Below are positions 6,550-62,740 of a DNA stretch of 64,000 nt, piece by piece. The translations under genes were made by a program, and so were the position numbers. Where the stretch lies: NCBI GenBank assembly GCA_976226885.1, contig OZ320313.1:118978001-119042000 (forward strand). Direction: 5' to 3'. Source of the DNA: Iphione sp. A-MEVVRFRX5 (Eukaryota). The notes under the pieces were generated by a model. That model worked only from the letters and a program-made list of their open reading frames with translations. It was not told where the DNA came from and made no database searches. How positions within the stretch are numbered: position 1 is the first letter of the stretch; each line of letters begins with the position of its first letter.

Positions 6550-6734
6550 ACATACCGCCCCCAACTATTACTGAAGCCCGCCATATAAGTTTAAATGCCG
6601 TCCGCGTGTCATGGGAAATAACCGCTACGTCACTTTGGAACCGAACAAAAGACATCACAGGATTCGAGGTTGCTTTGAGCAAAAATGACTGCCCTAGTGG
6701 CAGTAGAAAGAAGAAGTTGGACAAAAATGAACGG
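6550..6734 (+). CDS. Gene A exon: FN3 domain, first half
   Basis: ttctttcag|..|gtaagt; [25 protein letters not shown]...[11 protein letters not shown], with the FN3 SW and F/Y-x-V pattern; phase 1 to 0. Confidence 0.75.
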
Positions 6735-9700
6735 GTAAGTGTGCGATTGTGTTTTGTTTAAAAAAAATTCGATCGAACCTTGTAAAGAGCAATTCCGCTG
6801 TTTTAATTATTTTACCACAATATGCAAACAAACAGGGTCGGGCCTATCCCCTCTTACATGGATAATTCTATAGGGCCAGCATGTACTGAAAATGCAGCGT
6901 GTGCATTTTTTCCACTTCTTTTAACATGAACCGGGCACAGTAAATATTTCGATAAAGGTATAGTGTTGGATAACGTTGGGGGTGAATCTTATAATAATCT
7001 TAACATCAAGGATTCTATGTTTTGATCCTGTAGACCACCACGTTCTGGGAAGTGATGACTGGCCCGCTCTTCGCGTGTGTGCAGACTATGACGTCAAACG
7101 AGACGAGTAATTGGGGCCATGTGAGCCTAAAAACTGAAGGTGAATTGATGATACGCTTAAACACACACACGCAGGCACACACACACAGATATACATAGTA
7201 GGAACAACTCAGAATTATGACAATGGATGAGACCAGACAATTGCGCCCTTAACTACTACCTGGGTTGGTTATGCATTAGAAATCAAGTACAAGTAATTGT
7301 GACCAGCTAAAGCTGGCCTTAATTCTGAGATGTCGTAATTGTTGAGTTGACCAACGTGCACGTTGCCTCTTGATACATTGTATATACATTTATATAATGT
7401 TTACATTGTATGTCAGATATAAACATTGACAACATAGAAGGGGAATATGGTAGAGGGGAAGTGCTGGAGGGGGCGGAACAAGTGATGATAAACAGGAAGC
7501 AGAAGGAGAGGACCAATAATGAAATAGCCATGACCCGTAACACTTTAGATAGAATATGACAAACATTATGTACAAGTACGTTCATACCGCAAATTAGCAT
7601 GGTAGCCATCAAAATATAAGCAGTTTAGACATGGCATGCATACACATGTACATTATACATATGTATATTTATGTGTATGCATTCTTATCAACGCTTGTGC
7701 AAACACATCATGTATACACAATCATGCAACTGGCCTCAAGAAAATTGTTCCCCACTTTGCTTTAACGGATCGCATGATGCCAGTTATATTGCTTAGAAAG
7801 AAAGTTACAACTGGCCAATAAGGTGACCATTTGTAAGACACAGTCAGGATTCTTGAATCGAGTATGTGGATATATACACGGACAAAATATGATAATCACG
7901 ATATAATAAGCATGTATGGACGGCCTTCATTGACTTAGTACACATTAACCACCACTTCGAGACCACAAGCCGTTGTGCACTATGCTTACTTGGCTTTCCC
8001 CTCGCTAAGTTCTCATCCTCGGCATGCAATCGAGGTCTGCAGAGGGTTTTTGATGCACAGATTTGCAGACGCATCTGGTCACTTGGGACTGGTGCCAGAG
8101 GCCAATGCCTGTCTTTTGCTGACCCACTGCACCTGCGGGGCATGGACCGACTGACCTTTCTAGTGGATTAAGCGCCTAATTCACTCCTGCAGACCACCAT
8201 CTACCTACACTGGCTTTTGCCAGCATGTAGATTGCATTCCTCTTTTAAAAACCATCTCAGCAGCTGATCAATGCGGTCTCGGCGGTAGATCGGTTCCAAT
8301 CAAGTGATGAAGCTGTAGCGTGTCTGGAAATACCATTGGTAGATGTAGGGTATCGGCCGAAAATTAGCCCAATCCACCTGCAAATATATCTGCATCATTT
8401 TAGGAGATATCCCTGTTCGTTATCGCTCCAATAGTCTACAGCCGAGCCACTTTTACTCCCGGCGATGATCATTGCCACGTGTGAAATATGATCGTTGGAT
8501 GTCGGGTGTAGATTGTTGACGACAGACCTGTCACCACCAGGTAGATAAGCCTGTACCCCTGACTGTTGCAGTGAAAACGCCTCCCCGCATCGTCAGTAAC
8601 CTGGCCGCTCACAAGATCTATTACCCGTCTGAGGACATTAGTCTGCCCTGCGAGGCTACAGGATCGCCGCCACCAGAGTAAGTCGGTTTACACCTACAAC
8701 TTCACATTTAATTCCAGGTGGTGCTGCGGGTACTATCTCCAGCCCCGCCAATGCCCCTTAGGTCCCACCCTTGCTGGAATCACTCTAGAAAAATATTCAT
8801 TCCAATGGGCTTCTTATCGTCTCGAGACTGCAATATGTGGCTGGGGATGGGTGGGGGATGATGTAGTGAGGAAGTGTTCTGGCGAAAAAAATACCACATT
8901 TCCGTATTCTCCTACATTAAAAAGGTCATGCAATTACCGAGAAGGTGCATTGCAAGACATTACTATAACTTGGTAAAAACCTCTTTACTTCCAATATACT
9001 AGTCTCGTGCTTGAAGGAGAGAGAGGATGAACAGATCCTGCTAAGTACTTTGAGGTGCTTTGTAAACTGGAAGAGTGGCATGTTTGTGAGTAAACCGTTA
9101 ACACGATAAACATGTAAGAAGGCCCTTTTGTGAATCTGATTCGAAATGTGTGTCTGATGAACTACCCCTGTATTTTCAAGGAATATGGATTGTATGGTTA
9201 TAGTCTTAAGAAGCAAAATGCCTTTCAGTGTTTAAACTGCTGAAAACTGCCCCCCCCCCCAAAAAAAATAGGTGTGTTTCTGGTAATGACCAGCCAAAAA
9301 CCTAGATATGGAGGGGGGGTATCTTTATTTTTTAGATGTTTTCCCAGTTTCTTCCAATGGTTTGAAAAATGCTAAGACAATATCAAGAATTTCGACCAAT
9401 CTGTATGAGTTTTACATTTTGTTGGTGAATTTCCATGGATTTTGCTGTTTTTCTACTAAATTTACCAAAAAACTGTGCCGTGAAAAAACTTATCTAAGGA
9501 ACTTCAGCCTTGGAAACTCTTTGGGGCCAAAAAATTTTTAGGTAGGGGTGGTTACCAGAAACACACCTATTTTTTGTTTTTGGGCCTTATTAATCTTAGC
9601 GGAAAATAATGTGAATAGAAAAACCCTATCAGTTAACTGGACCGTTTGCATGACCTCTCTTCTAAATGCCATTTAGGGACGGTCAATTTATAATGCTGCA

Positions 9701-12700
9701 CACCTTAAAAGGCGAGGCTGTTATCCATTCTTCATAGATCACTGCGTTTCCGTCTGTTCGAAGCAGGATTTGTTCGATCTTAAGTGCATTATTGCTCATT
9801 ACTAAACTACATTGCACGTACATTGTTTTTCGAAGCGTAGGGAATGACCCCTTCGTTTATTTTCTGACTGAAATCCACTGTCATGTGCTATTGTGTTGCT
9901 TAAAAAACAACAATAGGATCACCTGGTTCGTCAACGGGAAACTCATTAGCTCGAGTTGGAACGGCTATGAGTTGTTTCCCAATGGGACGCTCTACATCGA
10001 CCACGCCTATGGGCAACACCAGGGGGAATACCGGTGCCATGCTACCAACACCGTTGGCAGAGCAGTCTCCGACGGAGCGTTGCTTGAATTTGCTGGTCAG
10101 TACGCAGTCTCGGCGCCATAATCCACTATCATCCTTAGAATTCATGTTTTAAACAAATGCTGCATGATCTAAATTGGCTTCTAAACGAGTATGCCTCTGT
10201 TAATCAAGTACATGTAGATGTGTCCTTTGATTTCACTTCATTGTAGGAAACTTTTTTGTTGTACGAATTGCTTTGGACTTGATGATTTTTAGATACCATT
10301 TGTAACTGTAAAATTATACATCTGTAGTTGTTCCCTTTTATTATAGTGACTTCCTGCTTAAAACAGATGATAAACGTTGCTTCAGGTCACACAATTTCTA
10401 GAAAAAACTAAATTTGTCATGCGGGTGCTTCTTTCTCGGGGACTTCGTTAACAGAGGTATACCTGTGATATCTTTCTAGTTAAACAAGACGTCCCACGTG
10501 CACAACAATATTAAATGTACTCTGTCATCTTCTTACGTACAGTGCTTGATTCGTTCCCCTACCGTCCACCCAACACTATGGAGGCCCACGCCGGTCACAG
10601 TCTTCGCCTACCTTGCGCCCAGAAGCCGCACAGTGTACCAGACGCCGAGATAACCTGGTACCAGGCGGACACGGAGAGCAACTTTGTGTCAGAAAACGAG
10701 CAAGTCATCACAAATCACAGGCGGGCTCTCGCGCCGGACGGTAAGTCGTCCCTGTGCCTCCCCAGCCATGCATTCAATCAACTACTAATTTCCTCGTCAT
10801 CGTCTCTGAATTGGTGAACAAAGTAGAAGGATAGACACCTCTTGAATGTATGCGTCCCAATTACCTTGCAAAATAGAAGCAACTGTTGTGACGTCCTCTC
10901 CAATAAACACATATACCTATTACCTCTGCCCTAACAGGCTCCCTGCTGTTCATCTCCGTTGTTAGCACAGACAGTGGGTTCTATAAGTGTGAGCTATGGA
11001 ACAACCAACTGGACAAAGGTGTCTTTGGGAGTGGCTCTATAGTAGCAGTACGAGGTAAGTAATCTGTTTTCCTTTCAGGTGTATGTTCATCAAAGGAATC
11101 ACCATTTAAATTTTATAAGTTGTATAAGGATTCATGAAGAATTGAGGCATATCATTCCCACTGGTCAACACACATGCACATATAACTCATCTGACTGTGT
11201 TATTGTGTGTAGCTACAATAATAATGCATAACAGATGTTTCAGTGTTTGTTCCGATTTTTTTACTGCATGGCCATACCAAAAATGCTTTGGTAGTAACAT
11301 GTTAATATGTAGATATTGAATACAAATGTTAAATTTTTGACACTTTCAATAAGCTGGTGTTAATTATGGCCTGTCAGTAATATTTAAACTCTACAAAAAA
11401 ATCATAAAACCTGTTACAATGCTATACAGTTGGGCACCTCCACAGGGACGCGCCTGGTAACAACCCTCATAGGTACCTCTGGTGGAGGTAATAATCTCAG
11501 AGGTTCCTCTGAGGCCTGAAATAGTCTTGGAGGTGTGAGAGAGACAGTCAATCACTTCAATCGAGGTTCCTCTGTTAATGGGAAACGTCTCAGAGATGAG
11601 AGAGAAGGGTGAACTCAGTTGGAGCTTCAGTTGGAACACCTCTGAGAGCTGGAATCGGCTCGATTGTTTGTGCTCCACACCCCCTACCAATTTCCTTACT
11701 TGGTGATGTCCCTGATGAACGAACATACCATGGGAACAACCTGACTTGTAAAACAGGGCTTTAGGCTCCATTCTACGGGATAACTTGCAGAGAGTGACCT
11801 TAGGCCACAAAATTTTGGATCATGCCGTGCCTCTAATCAGGAGAGTTTGGGGCAGAACCAAGGATGTCCCGATTAGACGCACCTGACTATATATAGGTTC
11901 ACCAATGATTTCTATACAGTGTTGAGAAGAAAGGCCTACGCAGTAGGCAAACTAACCATATAAAGTAACTATTTTAGAGTTTTGTTGAATTCCTATGATT
12001 TCCCATCTTCTTTCGACAGGTGGAGAAGACTTCCGCATAGCCAAACCATCTCTACTAGATAGCTCGTCAGACAACATCTTTGCCTTAGAAGGCGACAGAG
12101 CGACTATAACTTGTATATTTGGTGGAAGGTTAGTGAATGCGCACGTCAAGATATTCTAGAATTCTGGTTGCTTGATAGTATTACTTGTAATGGGAGAACA
12201 TGAAATCTTCTAAAGGTTTCGATCAAATATATATCGCGTTTCTAAAAGTAGAGACCAATGTTTACTCGTAAAAGGACTGTAAACAAATGTTCGATTTGAG
12301 CGACGTTTCCGGCATAAGTACCATTGCTGTAGATATGTAGATATATACTCCAGATAAAATTCCCTGTCTATGGACTGAATTAAGAAAAACAGTCAAATTG
12401 CTGCATCAGCTGTTCTCCTCTCCCACCCCTTTCCCTTTAAAAAAGGCCTACCCCTGACATCCTCTGGACGCGCGTTGGCGGCCGTCTGGACAGTCGGCAC
12501 CGAGTCATCGACTACAACCGGACGCTGGTCATCGACCCCGTCCGACTGAACGACACCGGCGACTACGAGTGTATCGGCTCCAACAAAGACGACGGCAGGA
12601 CGCTGTACAGCCACCCGGTCAAGTTCAAGCTCATCGTCAATGGTCATTATTAATTAAGGCATGGCTCCAACAGAGTAGTTCTTAAAACAAGGGATGGCGA

Positions 12701-15700
12701 AGTTTATCCGACTATGATAACATAAATGCCTGGATAAAATAAAAAATAATAAGAATAACATCACTAAACCCTTGGTACTATAATTATATGGAGTTGATGA
12801 TTACATCTGTGCTAGTGATGCTGCAACTGCAGAGCCTGCAGCTGCACATGTGAATCATACACAAAATTGTAGGATGGCAGGTTCAAAATACCACAACCTC
12901 GATATTCGCGGAAAGCTGCCCGAGGTTATTGTGAGAAGTCATATAGACTCCTGTAAATTCGCCATGGATCGTTTTTACATACTGCATTCACTACAAACCA
13001 TTATCAATCTGTTAGTATTTCTTGGTAAAGCGTCATTTTACCCCGTGACTCCTCCTCCCTCCCCTTCTCTGGTCTTAATTAGTCAAAGTCAAAAAGTGAA
13101 ATAGTAGAAATGAACTGACGAAGTTGTTCGGTTCGATTTGATTCGCGCTCCGGGTAGCCCTGGCCGATGACGAATTGGATCGTTCGTTCGTTGATAGGTT
13201 GTTGTGTTGGAGAACACGGGCCTTCGCCGTTGAGGCAGGCCAGTTGTAAATCTGAACTGAGCTGTTGATTATATACTAGAGTGGCGCTGCAAACGTGAGG
13301 TCGACCAGAGCCCCCTGTCGCACTCACCTGGTACAAATACCTTGGCATTGAGGCGCATGGACATGTGGCAGGTGGTGTCACCCATGTGCGGCCCCTGAAA
13401 GCATTAAGGTTTAAGGGGATTATAATGCGAGGTGGGTGGGGTGGGTGTAGGCATATGGAGAATGTTGAGAAACATGGCACGTGGTGCGGCCATGTGTACA
13501 GGGACAGGTGTGAACCGATGCTAAGCCTTAATTTCCATGTATCGGTATTTGTCATCCGCGTCTCTGTGTCGGCAACTTGGATATGTGTTCCTTTGATATG
13601 GACCCACTCGAACAAAAGAAACATGGACTCCATGTAGTTTCAAGGAAGGCAGGATAGTAAACCTGCCTATATCAAAATCAAGCCTAGTCCTACGTACATT
13701 TATGCAGGTGTGTTTCCACGTCGGTCAAAATAGAAACTGTAGTCCTCTGCTTTGGATATGTACCAAACCAAGAGATACGGTCTCCAAGCTGTTGCGACAG
13801 AGGTACAGCGAGAAAATATAATCACCTAGAAATTGGAGTGGGAAAGAACTATATACCCTATGTTCAAATACATAAAGACACATTATTAGTTCTACTTTTA
13901 GTCGATATTAAGGAGAAATTTTCAAATCATCTAGTTGAAAGTGTATTTCGAGCTTTAACCTATTCATATCTTATAACACCCAGCGTGCATCTCAACTGAA
14001 CAGGATACTCTCCGAATGTGGCTTGAACATTGCATACACACAGCATATATTTTCTCTTCGAGTGAAAAAAGGAACCGCATCGCAATGATAAGCGTAGTAA
14101 CGGACCGGAAATATAAACTCACAACTAAAAGTGGCTAATGCTCTGTGTGTACATCTTCATCCAGCTCGTCCACGATGGGTCGAAAAGCCGGCCGCCAAAA
14201 CAGTCTCAGTCGGGGACAACGTGACATTCGAGTGCCGGGCTGAGGGCTTCCCGGCGCCTGCCGCTCGCTGGCTGATCAACGGGGAACCAATACATATGCA
14301 GAGTAGGTTTAAAATCACACTTATTGCCTGTCTTCTCCTTTTCTATACTTTTTGTTTCCATTTCTGTCTCTGGGTATTTAAAAAGATAACGGAAATAAAC
14401 ATCAATTTACACATTTGTTCATAAAGTATATGAACTACATGTATATTCATTTCATAAGTACAGTTTCGTAAGTACATGCATATATGCACATTTCCCTCAT
14501 ACATGCATAATGATTTTCTGATATGTGCAGAATGTAGTCACTATTTGTTGACTTTATCAGTTGTGTAATATTTATGAACATATTATGTGCCAAATAAAAC
14601 GTGTGGACATGGTGCTACCCTGGGCCTAATTATTTACAAGAGCCTTTGGCCGATCTGTTGCCTATAGGCACATAAATTGAGTACTCTGTGAAAATTTCAC
14701 ACAGTTAAGAATTTCTCAATATTCGACACGAAATAATTGGTTTCAAGAGGGGACAGGAGCTACTTTTGCCTACATTCAAACTGCTTGTTATAGCACATAT
14801 AAAAAAAATATCCTTCAAAGTCACTGTATACCATCCATACAGATCAAAATTCAAAGATGCACCTTACGCCAGAGGGGGCATTGGTCTTAGTCAATGTAAC
14901 AAAGGACGATATGCAGAACCTCCAATGCAACGTCAGCAATACGAATGGTTATCTCTTTGCCAACGCCTTCCTCAATGTCTTGTGTAAGTCCGATTATAGA
15001 CTTCATGTACAATACAAAGGAAATTAAACTTATTTAAGTTCACAGTAACTTCTTTCATGTAAATGGTATATTGAGTTATTTTGTGGTATTGAAAAATTAT
15101 GATGGACTGTATCAAAAAGTCGTGAATATCCCTTGCATTCAGGAAATGCGCAGTTGACTTGGTGAATCAAATCTATGACTACAGGGGTATTTTTTTAAAT
15201 ATAATTCTATGGGCATTTGGCAGTATGTCAAGCGTAATCTTATTCTAAAGAAATGAACAAGATGCAAAGTAAAACAGCTGACGAAAGATAACTAAAACAT
15301 TACGGCGCGCATTTGCAGACCCGGTAGCTATCACCCTGCCACCCAGCAGTGTAGTACTTGCACCTGGAAATGTAGTCCTCTTTGAATGTGGCTTCGAGGC
15401 GGACCCGGGACTACCGGTCGCCATCACCTGGCTGCGCGGGGGTCAACCCATCGTCTTCGAACGAGGCCGCATCTACGAGACGGCTGACCACACGCTTGTC
15501 ATCAACACCACCCTGGAGGAAGATGGCGGCCTCTCGTTCGTGGCCGCCTACACCTGTCACGTCGAAAATGGTGTGGACAGTGTCGAAGCCACTGCCAAAC
15601 TGCAGCCACCGCCAAGCCCCCAGACGATGGCGTCCGCACAGTTTGGGGAAGGTCAGGGTGAGGGCGTTTGACGTCAACTTATGATTCATTTGTTCATGTT

Positions 15701-18700
15701 CAATTTGCTCATTTAGCAATGTTTGCGGTTTCTCTGTGTCGTTATTTCTGCTTTGTGTATTTCTACTGCGAGTTTGGCTCAGGCTGTTCGTCCCAGTCTA
15801 TTCGTTTATCACCCTTTCTCTCTCATCCTCGGTGTTTGCGTTTGTGCCGTGTTTCATCACGCATGTTTTCTCATCTTTCATCTTAAATACGAGGCAATTA
15901 TCATATAAATGAATCATGATAAACATACAAAATCAGCAAAACTATGTTATTATTTCGATGTGTGCTTGATGAAACCATCTCTATTTCCCGGGAAAGTATC
16001 AGGGAGGACTCAAGCAAAGTCCCTACTCTTGTAATTGATTGACATCCCCCCCCCCCTTGTCTTATTGAATGTTAATTTTAAGCTGTCCATTTTGTACGGA
16101 TTAAATCTTTTCATAACCGGCAATTTCAGGTTTTGGTTGGCTCTGTTTTAATAAAGACCTTTATTTACTCGACAAAGACAGACATCTTTCAGATTATGTT
16201 GAGTGTAAATCTGAGGGAATTCTATTGCATTAAACGTTTTACTTCTTAGCAAAGCGTCCATCCGTATTCAGTCATAAACAAATAGATTGTATGTTTACAG
16301 GCCTCTAACACTTTTAAACAGGTTAATTGTGTATACTATAAAACAAATAGTCTTGAAATCTAAGAATATAAGTTTATGTAGCTATATTACATAATCTAAC
16401 ATTTGAATTGGTTTTCAACGCATTATCATGTTAGTACCGAAAACAATATTCGCAGTGAATGATGCAACAATCAAAGTGATTATTTATGTCTTCTGCACAG
16501 ATTTCCTTTTCATCGGACTGACTGTGGGACTGACCATCATCGTGATCGTCTGCCTTGTGGCCCTGAGCGTATTCAAGAAACGACAACAGTCAATGCTCAC
16601 CCGGTCGGGTACAGACACAAGTATCCTCACCTACCTGTCGTCTGCTTCCCGCCTCGAGGAAGAAACAACCAGTAGGTGCAGCAAACTCGAGAGTTTTAAC
16701 AAGAATCAAAATTATTACACCAAAAAAAATGATAGAGATTTGAAACACAGACCTTAAAGATTTGCTCAGCCAGTGTCCTCCGTTGTCGCTAGAAAAATCA
16801 CGATACCTAGCGCTAACCACGGACCTTTATTATTGAACATCTGTTTTTTCTTTTTTAAGTGCTATGCCTGTAAATTAATTTTACAAACCATTTGTTTTAA
16901 GTTGTTTATCATTTCCAAATTTTATGGAAAGAGGTGAGAGTACACAGTCTAACAGTTAAACGGCATATGAAATTATTCCATCGGAAATTTCTAAAAAAAT
17001 TAAAATAGTCTCGTTAAATTTAGTACATATGTAACACCAAGGTGAAGAGTTTGTGGCGGTTCGCTTCAAGCCCATAAATGTGTCCACTCGTCTCACAGAA
17101 ATGGACTGCTTCCTGCCTGTCGTAGAACATAATCTCTTACCATCGAGTTTCAGTACATAAATTTGGCACTGAGAGCGTAAGGGAAGAGTTGCCTTTCATT
17201 TGCTGATAATGTTTCTTTTTGCGCAAAACCATAATTCTTGAGCTTCAATCATAACGTACGGCCGAAATTGAAATAAGCATAGCTTATAAACTCGGCGTTC
17301 CATTTTTAAAACAGTTCTGATATAAAACAACAGGTCAGACCACTTTAATCTACATTGATATGGTACTCTCATCTTGAAATTTCGACTTTAAGTTAACCTT
17401 TTTTCATACTACTGTATCACTGCGAAACACAACGTTCAGATATGAATGCAACACCTCCCTAGAATAGTTTATATTTTTTTTGTTTACAATTACGGTATTT
17501 CCTCAGTCACTCAGTTGGTCAAGAAAAACGCACCTGAAGACTCTCGGTTTGCGAGCCACTGGTTGGGGCAGCAGACGACTTTCGCACCTGATAGGACACC
17601 ACTGTGCCTGTGTTGTGTGCAAAATTTTGTGGCAAGATTAACATTTTGAAAAAAAAAGACAGACAATCAGTTGAAATAATTTTTGTATGCGTGCATAGAT
17701 TTTTAAAAAGCACCCTCCGAACATAACCTTAGGCAACTGGCAAAAAATGGAAACCAGCAATGTACGGGGTTTCAACAATCTTGCTGCAAAGCCAACTCCA
17801 ATGGTCCACCATGCACTGGTACAGTATGCATGTCTTGCTCGATTCCATCGATTTTGAGTAGTCAGTAAACTGTAGCTAACGACTCACTTGCAGGGTTGGC
17901 TCAGTCTGACATGACGGACTTTCCCTTGCTGCCCTATCTAGATGACGAGCAGCTCAAGGCGAACATCAAGGCGGTGCTCATTCAGCGCAGCCGCATTCAC
18001 CTGGGCACAACCCTTGGCAAAGGTAAGTGGATGTACTTATACAAAAGATTCTTCAGACATTTTATGGGTGTAACCTGTTCGATATGAACAGAATTCCATT
18101 ACAGCTAGTGTTGATATGCATGGACAATACATGTAGATGGGTTAGGAGATTATTTCGTCGCCCTCAGAAGTTTCACACCTATACTTCTATCTAGATACGA
18201 TTTTGTATCAACGTAAAAATGTTTTGTTATGCGTGATTAATGTTCACCTTGCCGTGTTATTTGAAGGAAATGCTATTACATACCAAAGATTAATAGACTA
18301 TATATAACATATAATTTATATGGGTCAGATAATTGTTGATTTGCACCATGCATCAATGAAAGATAATAGAGCAGTGGATAATGCCACTATACTTCAGCTA
18401 TCACTTGATCTGTGCAATAACAATCCATAGATCATAAGAGAATGTTAATGTGTGTAAGAGGCTATGCTTCTCTCCACCTTGGAGCAACTGTGCCATTGAC
18501 ACAGGAAGTCTCAGTTCCATGCCAACAGAATACCGACCCTACTGACCCAAAGTCATGGAAATGAGCATGCATCTATATTCTTAGGCGTTAGAAGGATATG
18601 ATATTCATCCAATAAGTAGAGAAGTACGTCTGATTCATGCTTGTTCTCATTTAGCCAATTCTGACTCACATGGGCAGCTTCTACTTCAATTCACTGATCA

Positions 18701-23508: not shown

Positions 23509-23546
<38 letters not shown>

Positions 23547-27475: not shown

Positions 27476-27537
27476 TAAGTCTGATACATATGTACCATGC
27501 ATCCTTGCATATATACCGCGCCTGCGACCCTTGGGTA

Positions 27538-29062: not shown

Positions 29063-32000
29063 TATAATGTCCAATAAGACCTCGCTACATGGTATCGATG
29101 CATGCTGACATGTGGGGTATGACAGAACAAAAAACACATGGCCCATGATATGTACATGGAACATTAACCTTTACTAGCATTCTAGGTGGCAGGTAAATGA
29201 CTTACTCCTACCTTTACACAGTTCAATGTGGTGGTATGTTGATATATTCCAGTATTTTACAACCCCACAGCAGGGAATTAAATGTATATCATATATCCCG
29301 GCTCCTTTACAACAATTATCCTATTTATTTCCACGATTAGAATGAAGCACAAAATAATTCCCGTAAATCTTGAGCCATTTCCTGAAAGGTATAGTCAGTA
29401 AAGTTACCTTTTCAATATAGGGAGAAACAATTTCAAAATATTTGCTATTAGGTTATGATGCAATTTCTGCTTTGATTTTTATGAATACATGTATTTCACT
29501 TTGGAAACAGTATTGTATTAGGTCATTCTTGGTGAATGGCAGTGGCAAATGGATGTCTGAAGACAAGCAAGTCATCCACATGTATCTGTATGGAAGTTTA
29601 TTTCCTTTGGTTGGTTTTATAACACCCATCGGCTATGGCAACTTTGTAGATATATTTCATTCTGTCTCGATGCCTTATGTTTTTTTGTATTGATGACATC
29701 ACAGTAAATGATGAAAAAGCAATGACAATTATTTTCATTCATGTTTGCCATGCCCATCTCATAAAGCTTGACCTTAAGCATTTCAGATGTAGGGATAAGC
29801 ACATATCCCATCGCTACCAATACACTACGAATAAGAATTAATAAATCAAGTAGTATTAACGATTCTGCTGTTTCCGTTTTCGACGTACTAACTATAATCA
29901 ATTGATTAATGCTTTAGTGGTGGCTGATATTGATGATTTGTTTATAGCGGTGGGCCTAGTACTACATGAATATTCTTAGATGTGGTGGCATATGACTTAA
30001 TAACTGGTACTGTGACATTCTGGTTAAAACGATAACTGACATCTTGTTTTACATCATGCTTGAATGTACTACCGACCCTAGTCTATAGGAATGCCCCCAC
30101 GTATCATTTATACTTACGGGGTTACAACAATGAAGCACTGATTTTATCAAGTACAACAGAAGCGAACGTTTTGAAATATTTTATTCACCTTACAACACAA
30201 CATTTCCTTTGACATTACTCTGCTTTCTTTTTGAATAATCACAATATGTTGAAGTTCTATACAACTCCTTTTTCATTTTGAACAAATCCTTTGTCCCGGA
30301 TAAGCAAATTTTAATATAGTACAAAACAAAAAAATCTCATCTTATCATGAGGTGTAAGCTACAGAAAATATAACAAAGTACAATACTGAACAGTACAGTA
30401 GTCTTAGAACAATCTAATGTGTCATACATAATACGATGCGAACAAAAATCTACAAGCTAGAAATACCTAAAATCAACTCGGCCGAGCTGACCACGTATTA
30501 GCACCAAATCATTTGCAGCTATACCAGGAATGTAGGAAATGAATATATCTAATACACTCTTCATATAGGTGCGTGCTGTTCATAAAGCCGCGAACAGGTC
30601 AGTCAATGCTACACGAAAACTGGGGCATTATTCCGCGGAAATTCTGGTCACACTCTTGCAGGTAAGATATGATGAAAAGGGAAGGGGGGAAGGGGGGAAG
30701 GGGGGAAGGGAAAGAACCATAAAGTGTTCCCACATCATACCGTCTCGTGCGAAAGGGGTATCATCTCATATATGTAATTACATGTATCTGTTCACGAGAA
30801 TCAGTTGTACGTAAAGGGCATATATTTCTCACATCAGCATTCTTTGGCTCTTCAAGCATCCTACCATCTTTGATATTACTAACCAACTACATTTTCTACG
30901 GGTTACCATATGCCTAATAAAGTATGTACAAACGAGCTTTTTACATGTATAGGGGCATTTTGGCGAGCTATGACATGTTGCGATATCAAAAGATTTAGTA
31001 TTTAAGGTGGGAAAAATATAATGTAAGACTGTGTCAAAAAGTATGAGATTCACACATAAAAAGGTCAGTACAGCATATTGAAAGGAAAAAAGTGTCCAGT
31101 ATATTTTGTAACAACGGTAGAAATGGATGCATGTACATGTACATGTTTTTGGTTACACCAACTGTTCCTTTAATAGTATGAAATACATTTTATTCTCAGT
31201 GTTATAGATAAATAGTGAAATACAGATCAAGACACGGGAAAGTATGTCAAAGTTATGTAATCTGAAATATAATTCGATATTTTATCTTCAGAAAGTATTT
31301 ATAAGGGCTACAAATCATGACCACATTGATATGGTTCAGACATTGTGACATCACAGAAAACAAGTACGGTACTATATATATAGATACATATCTCAAATGG
31401 CGTCATTATCTTGGCTCCAATTAACAGTTCGACGCATCCAGCTTGAACACTAAATTACTCTTTAATCTCGATTTTGAATAGGGAATTCCAATTAAACGGT
31501 AGAAAATGTTAAAGTAAAGCTCATGTTAAATGCACAAGTCTGAAGATAATGATCTGCAATAAATATTTACATTTAAAATTACTACTTATATCGATAATGA
31601 GGTTTTCAAATGTGCCCTACACAGTAGCGTCATGCTCTTGCCTGCAACAAAAGGAGAAAAAAATCTTGTGAATATTACCAGCATGTAGTTTTTTTTCATA
31701 ACGTAAAATAGCGATGAGTTTAGGGAGAGTTGGCACATACAATTACACACATACTCATTTACTGACACAAACATTTTCATATAGCCATGGTTTGCAACTC
31801 GCCAAATCAATTTTTGAAATTATTTCAAAGATTCTTATTTATGTTATAAAAAGTATAGTAATTCTATTTGGTAAAAGCAAACACTTTCGATTGCAAATCT
31901 CACCCTGTTAGAAGCCCGTGATCCACAGTGTAGTCACTTCCGATGTCTTCATGTTTAACAGGTGTTTCGACTGAAAATTCACGAAATGTCTATGTATGAG

Positions 32001-34636
32001 TTTTACAGATCTTTTAATGCACGTGGAATATTTCCATTTTTCATCGCACTTGTTAACATAGTGTCTTGGATATAGAAAATGTGGAGATCTTCCTTGAGCA
32101 AGCAGGTCAGTTGGTTATGTAAAAGTATCTGCAAGGGGAGCTGTTGTCAGAAATGGTCATTGATATGATAACTGTGGTAGCCAGTCTAGGCTTATGAGAA
32201 GTAGTGCTGTGCTGAAGCAGGTAGAAGGTTTTGTGTGATGCAAACTGCTTTATGGAAAAATGCACTAAAGAAAAAACATTTTCCATTGGGGGGTGGGGGT
32301 GTAATGCACCTTATAACCAAGGTAGGACAAAGTAACGTAGGTTTGAAGACGGAAATGTTGCTCTCAATTATTGGTATATTTTCGTATTCATGCACGCTGT
32401 TTTACAAAATATAGCATAAATCTTTGCATATTTTAAAACATTTCAATATCGTTTTACCAACGATTTCCTTACTATGTAGAAATGTAGGGACATGCTTTTG
32501 GCAATTTTGGTATAGTCTGATGCGATAGTCACCACGATATAGCGCCATGCAAAGATGTTCATATCTGTGTTATTCTATGTGTACCTGTGGTGCAAATTGC
32601 TGTATATTATGTGAGAACTTGGTGGACATGGCGTATGAAACGGTTCTTAATGTCTTCATTTCAAGGAATTCATTTGTTTCCAACCAGGTGAAATAGAGAT
32701 GTGTTTAATTACGTTCACTGATACAGTTATCAATAATAATAATACATTTGAATTAGTTACGTGTTCCTTTTAACCGAGGAAACGTACGGAATATCAAGAC
32801 TGTATTTAATGCCTTTATCACCTTATACTTGTGCAAGTATATCAAAAGCAAACTTACATTTCAAGGCTACCCAACCCACTAATACTGAAGCGGGGACTAG
32901 AGCACTTACAACTGGACAACGTTAACATTCAAGACACTCATCGCGCAATACATAATGCCACTGATTACGAAGACCGATGAAACATGGTAAATACCAAACC
33001 AGAAGACGTTTGCACCATTGGAAAAGAGGCTAATAGAAATCAGATCTTTTCCTTTCGACAGAGACCCAGGTTATAATCAGAAGTAAGAGAAATATAAATG
33101 TCAGATTCGAGGAACCCTTAGACGGGAGGGTATTAGAACCTTATCATAGCCTTGCCACCCAAGATAAGGGTAAACATAGGAGCAGACCTAGATGGATACA
33201 CTGGACAGCCAAAACTACGTGGTACAAGTGTCGTAGGTACAGATTGTATATCCAAACCTTGGTTAAACGGCAGTGGCCTCCACGCGTAGCGGGATTGAGG
33301 TGTCCTCTGTTTTTCCCATAAAAAAGATCAGATCAGACGCTTTCTTAAGGCATAGGAATTCAATAGTATCAAACGTAACGCTCATGGCTTGACGGGCAGG
33401 AGAACCCTCTTTAAATTTTGTGGACAGAATAATGCGACCACCGTCTTTGTTTTTTTTTGTAGATTACTGAACAGAAGATTGAACAGCAAGCGCTTCTCGA
33501 AAGCTTTCCCAGAGTAAACCATAATTTTACTGCAGAGATTAAACATAATCAGTGCATAGCTCATGGGAAACGTTCAAAAGTACCATAAAATGTAAAATTT
33601 CACACAAACATATTATAAATGTGTCATGTAAGAGGGAAAACAGCTATGGGAATAAAAGCTATAGGTATGGACTTGATTTAAATAATTGGGATATACAAGG
33701 GGCTTTGTCGAAAAGGAGCACAGCCAATGACAAAATAGGAAACTGTTTTTCTTACTTAAATATCAATAGCAAAACATGCCTCTTCTCTAAGTATATCTAG
33801 ACTGAAACAATGAGGATGGGGTGCGGCAAAAGGTTGATTATTACAATAGATGGCCGTATAAAAAGGAACGACGCGCGAGACGAACAATGGGGAGTTAAAT
33901 CATAGCAGTTTCTCACCCTACTGCAAAACAGCGGCAACCGAAATGCCTTCATCCTATGGCAAAAGGCCACATGCGCAATGGGTATCTTAGGCAGGAACAT
34001 AAAAATGGTTCTATCCCGTCCCATGCATATTGCAAACGTATAAGACTTTACAGGGTTGTGTCGTTCAAAGATGATGATAATCAAGTACATGTTGCAGCAA
34101 GTTCTGACGCCGGGGACTACTTACTCTGACTGCAACATCTCCGTCAACTGTGTTATTAGTGGAAATATTATTGTTGAGGCAACGATAGGGAAACATACCA
34201 TTACAATTTACAAACTCAGTGGAAATATTTAGCTCTTAGTTGGGGGAGAGAGAAGACTCTCACTAATTAGAAAACCATTGCTATACCCTTCATCGTTACA
34301 TAAAGCAATCACGTTGGCCATTCCAAAGAAAGTGATGCTGTTTTAAGTCCACTGGCAAATATGCAGTAGCTATATAAGCAGGGGTAGCGCAGGATTGGCC
34401 TATAAGAATGGTTACCGTATAGTAACCTGCTTGCCAGCAAAACGAAATAAATGTTCCATGAACTCCCGAGCGTGTTCACCATTTAAGATCGTTTCGCAAT
34501 ACTTCTTCAAAATATGAAATAACATATTTCATTGATTTCTATAGTTTAAAGCGTGCGTTACTTAGTAGTGTTAAACTCCTCTGTATAGCTTGTTAAGGAT
34601 TGCACTTCACTAGTATGTCATGAATGGCTTGCTTAC

Positions 34637-34765
34637 TTGAATAGTTTCGGGAAGTTTTCCTGCGTCGCATGATAATCACCACTACTATCACAAATAAGAT
34701 GATGGCGACAACGATACCTCCGATGATAAAGGGTAAGATAGATGTTATTGTGCCACTTGTATTAT
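34637..34765 (-). CDS. Gene B exon: transmembrane helix
   Basis: cttcag|..|gtaagc; ILPFIIGGIVVAIILFVIVVVIIM then RRRK; phase 1 to 1. Confidence 0.87.
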
Positions 34766-35459
34766 CTGAAGAAAATGTTTCATATTTAAATGTTGAGGTG
34801 CACAAGAATAATCAAAGGAAATGCTTTACCCATATATAAAACATGCGATTTCTTTTTACTACAACGACATGACTTGGAAATTTAGAATTTAATGTATTTC
34901 CGAACCCATTTCAGAAGAATAGACGCCGTTCTGACGCGAGTTTTAACAAATGTCATGTTGGTACATCGATAGAAAGGTTGTTTTCTGGCTATGCACATAA
35001 TTAACCGGTGTTCTTGTAAGTTTTCACGGGAGGTCTTACATTATTTACTGATAAAGGGTGAAAACGGAACATTACCATCCTTTCCGTTGCCTTTTCCCGA
35101 CCGTTTCTGTCCTTCAAGATGGATGTAATTGGTTGCAAATTCATCTGCGATGGAATGAACGAAGGGCACAAATTTTAAATGTGTCAAATCAATATTGTCG
35201 ATACTTGCACCACAGTGGATGCCATACAAATACAACTTACTCGAAACCAGGGCTTAACATCGCACGTGTTCGTCATGCCAGTGTACCTGCCAACAATAAC
35301 GACCATTATTCTACAGGCTTTATTCCCTTAGAACAAACTGCCAACGTATCCAATCGTTGTGCTAACTTTACACATCTTCATAGAAATCGTCTACACATTT
35401 CTCAGATTTTCCTGAATCAATACAATACACACATACTTTCTCTCTCTCGTTCGCTCTCC

Positions 35460-35516
<57 letters not shown>

Positions 35517-38500
35517 CTTCTATGTGTCAAGTTGAGGTCACAATCATGTTTGCAGTCGTGTGTAACCGCTGCATAAGTGGTGTGGTCAGTCTCTCTAGCT
35601 GGCCTCATTAGTACAGTCGACTCTCACTCTGCGACCAGCCGCCTGGGGCGACCATGTGCCCAGGGTGACCAGTTTTGCCCAGAACCACATGATTCTCTGT
35701 ATATTTTACTATATGATGGTCTCTACCAGAGGCAACCATTCGTTCAAGGTGACCATTTACCTGGGGAGACAACTATTATCAGTACAGAAATCCAACATGC
35801 CAGCGACCACTCCCCCCTAAACAGAACATTTGAAGGCGTATTCATTGTCACAGGTGTGGGCACAGGTGTTAGCATGACCAGTCCTTCCTAACAGAAGGGT
35901 ATCCCCAGGTGACCACCTAAATCTCTGAATTAAGGGTATTCAGAAGGTATGTTCATGACGTTCAGCATGTTTCGGACCTGTTTTGACTTTTACTCATCAA
36001 ATTCACCATTTTGGGCCTTAAACTCAGTAAATTCAGCACTTTTAGGACTTTATTTTACTTTTACTCGTCAAATTCAATACTGATAGGACATGTATTTACT
36101 TGGTAGAGAGAGAAGGAGAAGGGGAGAATATTTTCAGGCTAGACCTGCCCTAACCTCCAGTGAAATTATCTAAAGAATGGTAACCACTAAATTGATAGCG
36201 AGTGAGGGTGAAGGGGAGTTTATTTCAATGCTTGACCCCCCCCCCCAAAAAAAAAAAAAAAAATATGCCATTAATGACTTTCCATTGACAGTGCCTTCAT
36301 GCAAATGTGGTAGGTATGAAACGCTTGAACATTTAAATTTAAATAAGTTCCATACTTCCATCAATACAACAGATTCTTCTTATAGCAAATAATTTCTATA
36401 CCACAAGTTGATTTACAAAATTTCAGAAACTTTGTAAACCACTGTCTTTCTTCGAAGGATAACAATGCTTTTAGGAACTCTGTGCACTATTTAATGATGC
36501 CTTAATCATTTTACACATAATGTTGCAAATTAGATGGAGACCTTCATGAAAGTCCCCACAGATATACTTCAGATGTGCAGCAACTGTAAAGAGCAATGAA
36601 CTTTTTGTTATATAAATTTTATTATCTGGATATCTATACATATCTATATTACAATATTGTCCCAGTCCTCCAGGGAAGATCTTTTCAATAGGAGCTGTCC
36701 TGGATGGGTTAAAACCTACTGCTGCATATTGTCAATACAGACGTGCCATAAGTCACAAAGTTCTATCATGTACCTCACGTTGACCTATACCGTTAAGCAT
36801 AGACACATAGTGATAACCATAATTCTTCACTGAGCAAAATGCAAGGGCCACAAATGGAGATCTTATAGAAGTGCTTACCTCCAACATTGAGATACGCTCC
36901 AGCAATAACATAGCCATAGTCATTGGAGACGTTACACTGGTAGGAGCCACGGTCTTCATGTGAGACGTCGTTGAGCCACAGCTTGGAGCCATCTTTCCAT
37001 AATTTCATGTGTGGTTTTAACTTTTCTTCTGTTAACAGTTAAAACAGTTTGTTTTCCTAATATTTCTGGCGGGGATTGGATGGTTTTCATATAGGTTATA
37101 TTTTAGCCATAGATACTATATAACACATCCAAGAGAAATCTAAGTAATTCCACTGTAACAGGCGCACAATTATAGTTGTTAAGAATCAGTTATATTAATC
37201 CTTTCCTGACCAACAGCAGGCTTAGTCAAACATGCCACATTAAAAAGGTATTCAATCTCAATCCACAATTGTCTCAGTGGAAATATAGTCACATGACCTC
37301 ACCATTTGTCATTATTTACTCACCTATCCGGTTGATAAATGTTTATATATGGAACTATATGTTATTCTATTAATTCCCCCAAAGTGGTATTTTGGTGGTA
37401 ATAATTCCAAATAATAGCTATCATTCTACCTCATATTCTTATTAGGATATCTTACCTGGCAGCGCCTCGGTGTTTTTAAACCAGGTAACGTTGGGTTTGG
37501 GTTTTCCATCACCCACGCATTCGAACACTATGTTGCTCCCTTTCGAGGTATTCAGACTAACTGGTCCAGTTTGTATCGCAGGAAGAGCTGAGGACAAATC
37601 ACATTGTTTTCGCTTAAAATCACATGCCGGTGCAGCAATAATCAAAATGACCATGCGTAGAGTTCTTGAAATGTATTACCTTCTTACTGGTGTATGAAGG
37701 AGAATACTTAGACCTCTGATACTTCTTGTACATGTTACTTTCTGCTTTTGCGGGGAAAAGGACATTCCAATGTACCTACCATTTACTTTGACTTGTATCC
37801 GCACCTTTTCACTGCTGCCGGCTTTGTTTCTACCGAAACAGCAGTAATATCCCGAATCTTCCATGCGGGCGCTCCGGACGGTCAAAGTGTGGGTGTTGTT
37901 ATCAATAGACACTCTATCTGCCGGCAGATTTTGCTTTTCCCAGTCGACTTCGGGTGTCGGACTAATATAAATTAAAGTCAGTATATTGATATAACAAACT
38001 AAAAATATACATGTGTAAAAGTGGTATTTCATATAAGATGGAAACCGCCATTCGTACTCGTTTGTCGTGTGTGTAACTGAGTATTGGTACACTGCATAAA
38101 ACATATTGGATATTCAAAGAAAAGATTTTCTCTAGAAGTCTATATCACATGGACATAAATTCAATTTGCATTGCACTTACTGCCCACTGAACATGCACTT
38201 CAGGTGGAAGTCCTGCCCTTTGAATACAACTTGAGGACTTCTACTGTGGTACATGAGTGTTGGCACCAGGTTTTGCTTATGGTGATCTAAAATAGTTGAA
38301 AAAACATACTTTAGGGTATTCTATGGCCTTTCATGTAACTGTATTTGGAAACATGTTTCAGTTGCATCCTTGCTGATGCATTGATATCTGGATTGTGTAA
38401 AAGGTGCATTGATAAAGGATACGATGTACAAAACGCGGGGACTTCAATATCATGAAAGTATACTGTGCAGCCGATGCTTTGAGGATGAGCATTAATTTTG

Positions 38501-41500
38501 TTCTTCAGCAATGCGGCAGTTAAAAAAATTAAGAAGAACATACAAAGCATTAACCAACTATCAAGAAAGGTGACACATTAATCGAAAAACACGCGCAGGC
38601 TGCATGCCTTCAGTAGTTACTAGAAATTAGCTGCAGCTGCATACAGGCTTCCAATGAAGAACGATTTTCTGTACCTTTCCATCGATTACCGACCGAATTT
38701 GCTATTGCGACCATTTGAGGTGGGAACCAAAATTCTCTCTATACATAACCTATATGATTGATTATCGATTACCGACCAAATCAAGTTGAGGTTTATTCAT
38801 TGTCTCAGGTGTTGGTAAAGGTGTGAGGGCGACCACTACTCCCTAACAAAGCGTTTAGACGTTTATCATTGTCTCAGATGTTAGAAAAGGTGTGAGGGTG
38901 ACCACTGCTCCCTAAGAAAACGTTTGGAGGTTTATTCATTGTCTCAGATGGTGGTAAAGGTGTGAGGGCGACCACTACTACAAAAAAAAGGGATTGACTG
39001 AGGAAAGGATATTGCAATTTCCGACTAAACTTGCAATTCCGACCATCTGAGCTCGGACTCGACGTCTGGTCCGATATAGAGACTCCACTGTATTTCAAGG
39101 AAACTTGAAAACAGCACAGTTCATGGACACCCAGCCAAAAAATGGCATATTTCAAGAAAACTCGGCCAAAAAGCAGCATTTTTCATGGAAACTCAGCCAA
39201 ATATGACAAAAAACATAAGTAGATGTGTGGCAGTGTGCTACAATGTCTTTTTTTCTGCAGGAAACAATAACAACATTATCTATTTAACCCCACTTTTCTT
39301 ATTCTACTATGGGATTTGTTGCTTGTAAAATTGAACAGTTCCTATTTTTTAAATATTGCCATGCATGGCCACGCACAGACACGAGTACATGTGTTAAGTT
39401 AATGAGAAAAATGCCAAGCTAAGTGCATATATAGTACAGTCGTGAGTGGTACATGCCAATTCAGCTGTGTAAGGGAGACTGTTAAGTTAATGAGGCCATA
39501 AGGTCAACCTGTAGCCCTTGACTAATGGGAATTTCACCTTTAGCTCAGATGGTTAGGTGTGGCCTCTCATGCCAAAGGTCTGGAGTTCAATTCCCCACTG
39601 GTGCTAGCTCTCCAAGACCGGAAAAGTCTTCATAAACTAAAACTGGGTACACTCCTCCTATAAGTCATAGTTCCCCAAAAATAACCACTGAAGCACGCAC
39701 TGACAGCCATAGAGACATGCGTGCATGAAAACCCTGCCTAACGTTAATATTGAAAGCATTAAAAATTTACACCAGCCAGAGCTGTACGACAACAAGTCAT
39801 TACTTACTGTGTTCAACGCTCAAGTTAACACATCCAACGGCATACTTCTCGCTGCTAAGAGATACAAAGCATCTGTACAGCCCAGCATCGGATTCCTCCA
39901 GGTCTGAGAATGCAAGGCTCCCTGACAGGACACCAAAATAAAGATAAGAATCATTCAACACATGCATTACAATAGCATTATACTGCACCAGGGGAAGAAC
40001 AACACCATTACTGTTCCTTAGGTAGAGTGCATTAAAAACCATGAAAAAGACTCACAATCCCCCTTCCTTCTTCCCAATCCCATTCGTGTTACTACTAAAG
40101 TCGTGTTTGAAAGTTTATATATATATAATCGCCTTTCAACCTACCATTCTCATCCCAACTTCTCCGACGATCTTTCCTGATGAGACTACCACTGCGAGCA
40201 CACTTATCACCTAAAATATGAAATACCTGGTTTATTGACGCACTATGATCGAGCGGCTTGCCCTCATGCACAACTTCGTAAAGAAGAGAACACCGAATGA
40301 GCAGATATAGTACACCAGAAAGAGTAACCTGAGACTACACGGATGTGCGGACGTTTTTTACTAGATTGACACGACATATTCAACGTTATGTTTATAGAGT
40401 CGATTCACGGTGTTATGTATGAACTGTAGACGTGTACTTACTCCGGAGCTTCTGCCAGGAAAATTTGAAGTTGCCCACGCCCTGTACTCCGTCACACGGC
40501 AGGGTGATCTTCTTGCCGACTGATCCATTCATCGGTGTAATATGCTTAGTGTGCGGCACCGTGATATTGATATCTGAACACAGAGATATGGTTTTGTAAT
40601 CAGAGGCTAAATCGTGTTTGTGAATAAGCATGACATGGATTCACAGAGTTGGCGGTATTTGTTGGAAAATCAAAGACTTGGCCAATATCCCGAAGTAAAA
40701 TTTATTTTAAAAATGTGACAGGTAACTTACACTCGCGGCGAAGCACGGTAACATTGGACATAGCTCTGCCGCAGCCATTGCTTGCCCAGCACTGGTAGCT
40801 TCCTTCATTTTTGCTGTAGAGCTTGAGGTTACCGTCCTGTATTTCGGTTCCGTTTCCCGCTTTGAACGTTCGGCCGTCTTTCAACCACGTGTATCTACGT
40901 AGGAGGAACGGAGTGCAACATATAGCTGAGCGATGTTCCGTATATTAAAATTCATTTTTGTGAGAATGTGCACGCACGAAGATATTCATTGGCTATGTTC
41001 ACATACACATGGAAATAGATGGTAAACTTCAACAATACGTATAACAACCTATATGTATGCGAACCTTCGGTGCCTTTACAACCACGTGTATAAATGTTGG
41101 TGGTAAGGTAATCAACGTTTGGGGATAAGTGATGCTCTGCAGAGCGATTTGCACAGGTCAAAGTTTCGTGTCCACAGTTATTCATAAGCTATATAAACAG
41201 GCACATATTCATGGAAATCTCGGGTAAAACTGAACTATAAGGAGTATACGCATAAAAAAATTGCTTTTGACATGCCATGTAGAACATGGCAGGTTTACTC
41301 ACGTGATGGGTTCGTCTCCCTCTGCTACGCAGTGTAGTGTCCACCATTTGTTTTCATTTGTCGAGATGTGTGGGGGTGGGCCTGCGACCATTACTGGAGG
41401 CAGGCCTGAGGCTGTCATTTACAAAAAGGCAAGTCGGAAACAATGATTAATAAGCCTGACTGAAAGGTTTCAGCCCGCGGTAAGGTGACCGAGTCGGCAC

Positions 41501-43077
41501 CTTCTAGTCCCACTATGTCTAAATCAACCACTATAAATAGCTGTTTTGGGCCTGAATGTAAATAAGAGCTTTGGCTCTCCCCCCCCCGCGTTTGCCTACA
41601 ACGTCACGAAAGCATATTTTACATACACGTACATAATAAAAATTGAGAAAACTGAAATTGTCATACTCTGCATTCTGTTTGTTGTGATTAACTGAAGCAG
41701 TCCGCTATTATTTTACACAATATCTGTAATATATAAAAGAGAACATCACTTCATCTTCCCTTTAGATGTCATTGCTCGACTTTGAGTTTAGTAGTGTGCC
41801 CTAGTCATGTACCGTTACACTCCTATTAGAGTTTTATATTTATTGTCTTCCTACGGGGACACATGTGTGAACATGTGGTGTTTACCAAGCAATACTTGAG
41901 CATTGCGACAGGGGTCGCGAGTGTAGCGTGCTCGGCGGTATGCTGTTGAATACCCCTAATTAGGCATGTCCTGTACTGCACTGTAAAGGAAACTGCTCTT
42001 GTCTATATTGAGACAACCCGGTTTGACACATTTGGCACATTATTCTAAGGTATGTGACTTTATGTTTTGTGTAATTTATCGTATTTATATGCAATAATAT
42101 ATTTTTGGATCATGTCCGGTTCATATCAGGATTTTTTCTAGGATTTCTAGAATAATTAAGCACGTGCCGCCGGCATGCTTTGACAACGGGTTCTCTACAG
42201 TTTACTTACAGACTTACATTGGCCGGCCTTTTATTATTACCAGCACGAGAAACAGCTTAATTTTGGATGTAATTATGAAATTCTTTTATCTGTGGAATAT
42301 TGAGAACTTAGTTCATTAGCTGCACCATTTTCCTCCGTTTGGGGCCCCTTTGCTTAGTTTGAACAGACAAACAATTATGCATGTACCCTATCCAACTGCA
42401 CCACCACAGCACACTCATTCTTCCATGCCATTATACCTGTGTAGACCGCACTAAAAAAAGAGACATTTTAGTCTGCCAGGGTCGGGTGCCAGCAGCGGTC
42501 CGTCCAGCAAACAAGGAGGGCAGAAATCAATCCTAATCACGTGACGGGGAACGCCAAGGACCGCAGTTCCCGCTCCCAGTGGACGGCGGCGGGGCCACTC
42601 CCTGACTTTGAGTTATAGACTGCGTGCTGATCTATCTTATCATTGAGGGGTCCTGACGATAAAGGACTTATCTGATCACAGGAATTACCACCTGACCTTT
42701 TAAGGTTCCCGTCAGCTAAATATACCGAGGCTTTTTGCTGTCTTCTACCTTCGGAAGTAAAGTCTATTAAACGGTTCCTTCTTCTGCATGCTGATTCTTG
42801 CGCTTTGATTAAATGTAAAAAATGGTGGGTAATAACATACGCATTTCTGTATACGTATACGTGTAATAACTAACTGGTGTTTCATAGTTTATGCTATATA
42901 TATCTGGTTATGTCGATATTTTAAAACAGAGGCACGCAGCCAACACTGTTTCTGTTGGATGGATTAGGACGTCGACGAAGACAGTGAAGATTAAAACTTA
43001 CTGCAATTCTCAGCGATGACCCTCGAGACTGCACAGAAGAGGAACAGCAGGGTAAATACCGTTTCGAACGGTGGCAT
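34637..43077 (-). CDS. Gene B (spliced, 3' end unresolved): type I membrane protein with signal peptide, four L1/neuroglian-like Ig domains (Ig1-4) and TM; no kinase found
   Basis: 11 exons joined by hand with GT-AG boundaries and continuous phase (1360 nt, about 453 aa to the end of the TM exon). Confidence 0.87.
35439..35516. repeat. (CT)n microsatellite, imperfect
   Basis: Direct reading. Confidence 0.95.
36879..37028 (-). CDS. Gene B exon: Ig4b
   Basis: taacag|..|gtaagc; GSKLWLNDVSHEDRGSYQCNVSNDYGYVIAGAYLNVG; phase 1 to 1. Confidence 0.9.
37456..37587 (-). CDS. Gene B exon: Ig4a
   Basis: cctcag|..|gtaaga; LPAIQTGP...GSNIVFECVGDGKPKPNVTWFKN; phase 1 to 1. Confidence 0.9.
37780..37961 (-). 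CDS. Gene B exon: Ig3b
   Basis: tattag|..|gtaggt; PTPEVDWEK...HTLTVRSARMEDSGYYCCFGRN...IQVKVN; phase 2 to 1. Confidence 0.9.
38181..38286 (-). CDS. Gene B exon: Ig3a
   Basis: ttttag|..|gtaagt; LVPTLMYHSRSPQVVFKGQDFHLKCMFSG; phase 1 to 2; not in the ORF track. Confidence 0.87.
38788..38980. repeat. Tandem repeat of about 70 bp, about 2.7 copies
   Basis: GAGGTTTATTCATTGTCTCAG...AAAGGTGTGAGGGCGACCACTACT starts at 38788, 38858 and 38927. Confidence 0.88.
39534..39604 (+). mobile_element. tRNA-like sequence (probable tRNA-derived SINE head or tRNA pseudogene)
   Basis: A box TAGCTCAGATGG, B box GGAGTTCAATTCC, anticodon-like arm TGGC-CTCTCAT-GCCA (CTC); poor acceptor stem. Confidence 0.55.
39808..39921 (-). 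CDS. Gene B exon: Ig2b
   Basis: tgtcag|..|gtaagt; GSLAFSDLEESDAGLYRCFV...VNLSVEH; phase 1 to 1. Confidence 0.9.
40145..40210 (-). CDS. Gene B exon: Ig2 middle (66 nt)
   Basis: ttttag|..|gtaggt; DKCARSGSLIRKDRRRSWDEN; phase 1 to 1; supplies the missing C-D strands before GSLAF. Confidence 0.75.
40442..40573 (-). CDS. Gene B exon: Ig2a
   Basis: gttcag|..|gtaagt; GKKITLPCDGVQGVGNFKFSWQKLR; phase 1 to 1. Confidence 0.87.
40731..40894 (-). CDS. Gene B exon: Ig1b
   Basis: acgtag|..|gtaagt; YTWLKDG...GNLKL...EGSYQCWASNGCGRAMSNVTVLRRE; phase 2 to 1. Confidence 0.9.
41303..41411 (-). CDS. Gene B exon: Ig1a
   Basis: tgacag|..|gtgagt; SGLPPVMVAGPPPHISTNENKWWTLHCVAEGDEPI; phase 1 to 2. Confidence 0.82.
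43002..43077 (-). CDS. Gene B exon: start codon and signal peptide
   Basis: Acceptor ttgcag at 43086-87; MPPFETVFTLLFLFCAVSRVIAENC; donor gtaagt; phase 1 matches the next exon. Confidence 0.75.
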
Positions 43078-62599: not shown

Positions 62600-62740
62600 G
62601 ATCTACTCTCTACATATATGGATCTGTAGCTATTGATATGGCCACATATGAACAGATTAGTACAGGTGCTATAGCACTAACAAAATACATCTGCAGAGCC
62701 ATATCCATTTAAAAAAAATATGGATACATGTGAAATTCAC
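62600..62740. mobile_element. Partial inverted copy of the interior of the 61606 element
   Basis: GGCCACATATGAACAGATTAGTACA...GATACATGTGAAAT is a reverse-complement match to about 61735-61880. Confidence 0.65.

Follow-up and report, generated by a model that had tools for sequence, protein, structure and literature searches.

Two converging genes, here named A and B, in a 64-kb window of Iphione sp. A-MEVVRFRX5 (assembly GCA_976226885.1, contig OZ320313.1, positions 118,978,001 to 119,042,000) are probably two intact, single-copy and deeply diverged members of the L1/contactin-type immunoglobulin (Ig) superfamily that lie tail to tail and would each serve as a recognition molecule of its own. 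Gene A (+ strand) is predicted to encode a receptor with a kinase and gene B (- strand) a receptor without one, and 9.4 kb separate the stop of A (position 25208 of the window) from the transmembrane (TM) exon of B. The assembly totals 1.18 Gb and has 89 contigs, among them ones of 89-179 Mb; no close paralogue of A or of B was found anywhere in the genome. A first-pass annotation of the window had described the converging pair with about 9 kb between A's stop and the TM exon of B, and had listed the exon sizes and intron phases; the distance agrees, and the exon structures are borne out by AG acceptors, GT donors and a single open frame once the exons are joined.

The head of A is encoded by eight half-domain exons between 8572 and 14983 (+), which make up Ig1 to Ig4: 8572-8677 (106 nt), 9917-10095 (179 nt), 10543-10740 (198 nt), 10938-11054 (117 nt), 12020-12128 (109 nt), 12446-12642 (197 nt), 14165-14302 (138 nt) and 14843-14983 (141 nt). 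All have AG/GT borders, the joined frame is open, the Cys/Trp/Cys hallmarks of Ig domains are present, and Pfam matches are to I-set and Ig_3; the intron phases of the region run 1-2-1-1-1-2-1-1-1. A fifth Ig domain follows in a single exon (15319-15657, +; Pfam I-set, 38.5 bits; phase 1 in, phase 1 out). In the TM exon (16501-16671, +) a hydrophobic stretch is followed by a basic stop-transfer segment, and acceptor and donor are both phase 1. The in-phase chain continues through a juxtamembrane exon (17894-18022, +) into six kinase exons (20215-20298, 21129-21313, 21554-21663, 22075-22237, 24489-24625 and 25016-25208, +), the last of which holds the stop, and Pfam PK_Tyr_Ser-Thr matches the exon at 22075-22237. 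This unbroken chain from Ig1-4 through the fifth Ig and the TM segment to the kinase, together with the Pfam match, upholds the earlier description of A as a kinase-bearing receptor. Upstream of the model, an FN3-looking open reading frame (ORF; 6550-6758, +) was considered as part of A and rejected, given the absence of a Pfam match and a donor in phase 0 where phase 1 is required. The same ORF has a good acceptor and sits at the start coordinate of the first-pass annotation; it could be noise or a piece of a different gene.

The kinase of A is assigned by sequence to the MET/RON subfamily and, as predicted, is catalytically intact. The assignment was made exon by exon only. Against PDB, the C-lobe exon scores 65.4 bits with MET, 62.1 with RON and 48.7 with the next family, and the N-lobe exon 55.3 bits with MET, 46.2 with RON and 44.2 with Mer; the best matches of the activation-loop exon are InsR/ROS/IGF1R, not MET. 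The catalytic motifs, GxGxx and PVRWMAPE among them, are all intact, and a YxN motif can be read in the C-terminal tail. No Sema domain lies within 13 Mb of A, the nearest match being more than 13 Mb off, and the model does not cover the extreme N terminus of A.

Gene B yields a model of at least 453 residues: a signal peptide leads into four Ig domains, six stalk residues join these to a TM segment, and the tail after it is short and basic. Its first coding exon (43002-43077, -) carries the ATG and a signal peptide with a hydrophobic core, and ends in a perfect GTAAGT donor whose phase 1 fits the Ig1a exon. Nine exons between 36879 and 41411 (-) encode Ig1 to Ig4, with canonical splice sites, an open frame, Ig hallmarks in four of four domains and Pfam I-set matches: 41303-41411 (109 nt), 40731-40894 (164 nt), 40442-40573 (132 nt), 40145-40210 (66 nt), 39808-39921 (114 nt), 38181-38286 (106 nt), 37780-37961 (182 nt), 37456-37587 (132 nt) and 36879-37028 (150 nt). 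The phases repeat the series of A, with one extra phase-1 intron that cuts the Ig2a exon into 132 and 66 nt. A TM exon had been annotated at 34606-34755 (-); the exon is there, but the phase chain fits only 34637-34765, where the acceptor at 34765 takes phase 1 from Ig4b and a strong GTAAGC donor at 34637 closes an exon coding for the stalk, the TM segment and the start of the basic cytoplasmic tail. Read-through past this donor meets a stop after 12 more codons, with no AATAAA in the 1.5 kb after it. With a strong donor closing the TM exon and no polyadenylation signal after the read-through stop, one further small exon at the 3' end of B is likely from the sequence.

The spacer between the two genes (25209-34636, 9.4 kb, assigned to neither strand) may hold this unrecognised last exon or exons. 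No kinase-like and no L1-tail-like sequence was found on the B strand between 25.2 and 34.6 kb, and the long ORFs of the spacer give no Pfam domain. The earlier view that B carries neither a kinase nor a full L1 tail therefore held for the 9.4 kb beyond its TM segment. Within the introns of B, a repeated element whose copies translate into similar motifs occurs at 38777-38842, 38906-39087 and 35774-35887 (- frames) and is probably a small interspersed repeat.

A profile of A and B, run over fetched paralogous loci, revealed the eight-exon Ig1-4 series with identical break points in five further genes on three chromosomes. These are C10 (at about 16.59-16.61 Mb), C4a (near 87.55 Mb), C4b (near 85.82 Mb), and C1b and C1c, which share a chromosome with the window and lie near 123.6 Mb. 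Their Ig1-4 modules are all open, and exon sizes of 103-197 nt mirror those of A and B. On C15 and C17 each domain of the Ig arrays has an exon to itself, and these arrays were left out as generic. In a whole-genome search, three Bravo_FIGEY tails were found, none of them in the window; because these tails belong to C1b, C1c and C4b, the three are classed by sequence as true L1-type genes. The cytoplasmic tails of C1b and C1c, used as queries, gave no match in the window. C1c (about 123651650-123663370, +) is itself short: Ig1-4 in the eight-exon layout are followed by a fifth Ig that is split, by a TM exon and by a cytoplasmic tail with SFIGAY at its end (Bravo_FIGEY, 40.5 bits), and the 3.7 kb from Ig4 to the tail leave no space for FN3 repeats.

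The first-pass annotation had taken the common intron-phase series as a link between A and B. This argument falls, since the same series is common to five other family genes elsewhere in the genome: the exon layout shared by A and B is an inherited family trait and marks no special tie between the two.

Two lines of evidence confirm that the Ig1-4 modules of A and B are of the L1/contactin type, as had been annotated. In a maximum-likelihood tree the seven genes, including those with Bravo_FIGEY tails, form a clade against generic Ig arrays with support 100/99, and matches to PDB are specific for domain position. The Ig3b exon of A matches Ig3 of contactin-5 and neurofascin and that of B Ig3 of neurofascin, while the Ig4b exons of both match Ig4 of neurofascin and contactins (for B, neurofascin and contactin-1). 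In the alignment, the Ig2-Ig3 linker of A and B is equal in length to that of the L1-tailed paralogues; an extended linker at this place permits the horseshoe bend, in which Ig1 contacts Ig4 and Ig2 contacts Ig3 (PMC3406286). A large profile search with the Ig3b exon alignment of A and B returned only giant multi-Ig proteins, as scores sum over many domains, and no orthologue or named L1 relative; these matches were used solely as generic-Ig background and outgroup. A word-indexed protein search with the ORF of the fifth Ig of A found nothing, the length window for a single-exon query excluding full-length proteins.

Over the four Ig domains A and B are colinear, with 28% identity in 395 amino acids (152 bits, E 5e-47), and are thus as highly diverged as first described. 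This barely exceeds the similarity to A of runs of four I-set domains from giant Ig proteins with no relation to it, at 26-29.5% and up to 134 bits. The expectation that A and B are mutual closest relatives failed by similarity, with A nearer to C10 (34%, 209 bits), C4a (33%, 199 bits), C4b (33%, 186 bits) and C1b (31%, 183 bits), and C1b the best match of B (29%, 159 bits). Residues exclusive to one pair do not single out A and B either: they share 17, and several other pairs share 14-16.

The tree strongly supports (C1b,C1c) and (C4b,(C10,C4a)), with A and B basal and their order not settled. When the outgroup was removed, A and B fell on one side of a weak branch (68/60). When A or B was dropped in turn, the remaining one lay outside the crown to which the L1-tailed genes belong (83/85 and 93/91). 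The branch of B is very long, and its attraction to the outgroup is a real possibility. The trees thus lend moderate support to a placement of both A and B outside the crown of L1-tailed genes.

The pair quite likely originated by an ancient duplication in place, which the tree by itself does not show. An L1-like ancestor would have undergone a local inverted duplication followed by long separate divergence of the copies; A would have acquired its kinase region, and neither A nor B would have kept, or ever had, the distal Ig/FN3 part or the L1 tail. Such an origin is favoured because chance adjacency is very improbable and because the family visibly spreads by local duplication. With about seven family members in 1.18 Gb, we estimate that about 0.001 pairs would fall within 20 kb of each other by chance; C1b and C1c form a tandem pair, and 1.7 Mb separate C4a from C4b. 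The old local duplication proposed in the first-pass annotation hence stays plausible from the adjacency in a small family and from the position of both genes outside the crown, but draws no support from the intron phases. It is fairly unlikely that A and B instead stem from different family members and became neighbours by rearrangement, although several results point that way. The fifth Ig of A matches the single-exon Ig of C4b and C4a, the best match of B is C1b, A scores higher against four other members than against B, and in approximately unbiased (AU) tests neither a grouping of A with the C4/C10 genes (p 0.39) nor one of B with C1b/C1c (p 0.38) is rejected. Set against these are the low expectation of chance neighbours, the habit of local duplication in the family, and the finding that A and B, analysed singly, both lie outside the crown. 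The fifth Ig of A is closest to the single-exon Ig next after Ig5 in C4b and C4a (34% and 31%). Its position resembles that of an Ig6, and A may therefore have lost an Ig5; as the domain is most like the post-Ig5 exon of those genes, it also suggests descent of A from a longer L1-like gene.

Several points weigh against the reading of A and B as two intact, single-copy, independently diverged family members. Both gene models were predicted from genomic DNA alone. A signal-peptide exon of A was looked for in the window and not found, and splice and poly(A) signals failed to separate candidates for the last exon of B. The census of about seven genes (A, B and five others) is a lower bound. A scores above its B score against C10, C4a, C4b and C1b (183-209 versus 152 bits). 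In the tree rooted by generic Ig arrays, forcing A and B to be sisters costs 4.3 log-likelihood units (AU p 0.095), and the trees comprise seven genes of one genome and a distant generic-Ig outgroup, without named L1, contactin, DSCAM or hemolin sequences. Of the proposal that the Ig1-4 modules of A and B are sisters to the exclusion of the L1-type genes, the place of both outside the L1-tailed crown has moderate support, while the sisterhood itself is not settled. It is highly improbable that B is what remains of a decaying gene, or that a longer L1-like gene was mis-modelled and B is just a piece of it. The great length of its branch (1.9-3.1 changes per site), the open 3' end and a model built from genomic sequence only would fit such a remnant; yet 11 of 11 exons are open with strong canonical splice sites, the start codon and signal peptide are in place, all eight Ig cysteines, the four tryptophans and an in-phase TM segment are kept, and the sequence downstream holds no FN3, kinase or FIGEY remnants.

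As two separate recognition molecules, A would signal upon clustering of its Ig1-4 head through homophilic or heterophilic binding, and B would serve as a short adhesion or recognition molecule. A functional system of the two, in which the kinase receptor A would have B as its ligand in trans, its co-receptor in cis or its decoy, appears distinctly unlikely from the sequences. It is true that the genes are neighbours, that both predicted proteins have an L1/contactin-type Ig1-4 head, that such heads bind homophilically with Ig1-4 as the minimal unit in L1 (PMC3406286), that L1-type molecules are reported to bind receptor tyrosine kinases via Ig domains (PMC3398014), and that kinase-less relatives of kinase receptors exist, FGFRL1 being an example (PMC2754479). 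However, the ectodomains are only as similar as any two family members, the genes converge and have no common promoter, and the link that had been offered, the shared intron phases, is family-wide. The decoy variant, in which B would share the ligand of A, is unlikely because Ig1-4 identity is only 28%, no higher than to other family members. Heterophilic contact between A and B is conceivable by analogy, given the homophilic binding of L1 Ig1-4 and the reported binding of L1-type molecules to receptor kinases. We regard it as very unlikely that A and B bind through their Ig1-4 heads with B as a membrane-bound ligand or cis-modulator of A; if they did, the locus would be a self-contained contact-sensing signalling pair from a single local duplication.

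Elsewhere in the window, GA-type microsatellites at about 35372-35594 and about 23480-23560 translate as Arg-Glu runs in several frames. At about 61550-63100, ORF pieces of the + strand match pieces of the - strand with 56-70% amino acid identity; this cluster of inverted repeats possibly represents transposon arms.

If the models hold, A unites in one protein an adhesion head of the L1/contactin type and, directly coupled to it, a kinase of the MET type; known systems make this coupling between separate proteins, with L1-type molecules reportedly binding receptor kinases (PMC3398014). B and the short, L1-tailed C1c would be short membrane proteins made from a four- or five-Ig head alone. The locus would offer a case for how receptor kinases gain new ectodomains by exon shuffling, which phase-1 domain boundaries ease. 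The domain combination of A is of more interest than its pairing with B. For that pairing, it is settled that the shared exon pattern is unusable as evidence, and the pairing idea otherwise adds little.

With the L1 family (L1CAM/neuroglian type), A and B share the Ig1-4 module in the half-domain exon layout of this genome's L1-tailed genes. L1 proteins have six Ig domains and three to five FN3 repeats, whereas A has five Ig domains and B four; the fifth Ig of A and Ig4 of B are each spliced straight to the TM exon, and no FN3 match was found among the ORFs scanned for either gene. The FIGQY-type ankyrin-binding tail of L1 proteins (Pfam Bravo_FIGEY) is absent from both, and A has a kinase in its place. 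Both A and B lack the six Ig domains, the FN3 repeats and the FIGQY tail, and therefore fall outside the definition of the L1 family. A resembles MET and RON in its catalytic motifs and YxN tail motif, and for two of its kinase exons MET is the top match, followed by RON. MET and RON have a Sema-PSI-IPT ectodomain, whereas that of A consists of L1-type Ig domains, so that A is not of the MET family in this part. No account of an L1-headed MET-type kinase was found in the literature, a weak negative.

The two genes together recall FGFR and FGFRL1: a receptor with a tyrosine kinase stands beside a kinase-less one, described as a close relative of the FGFRs (PMC2754479), that combines a related Ig ectodomain with a TM segment and a short tail. 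Unlike that pair, A and B are only 28% identical in Ig1-4 and differ in Ig number, and a shared ligand cannot be assumed. B finally resembles hemolin, the insect four-Ig horseshoe protein related to Ig1-4 of L1 (PMC3406286), in consisting of the four-Ig module only, and hemolin is among its PDB matches (31.6 bits, not the best). Whereas hemolin is secreted, B as predicted is anchored in the membrane by a TM segment followed by a cytoplasmic tail.

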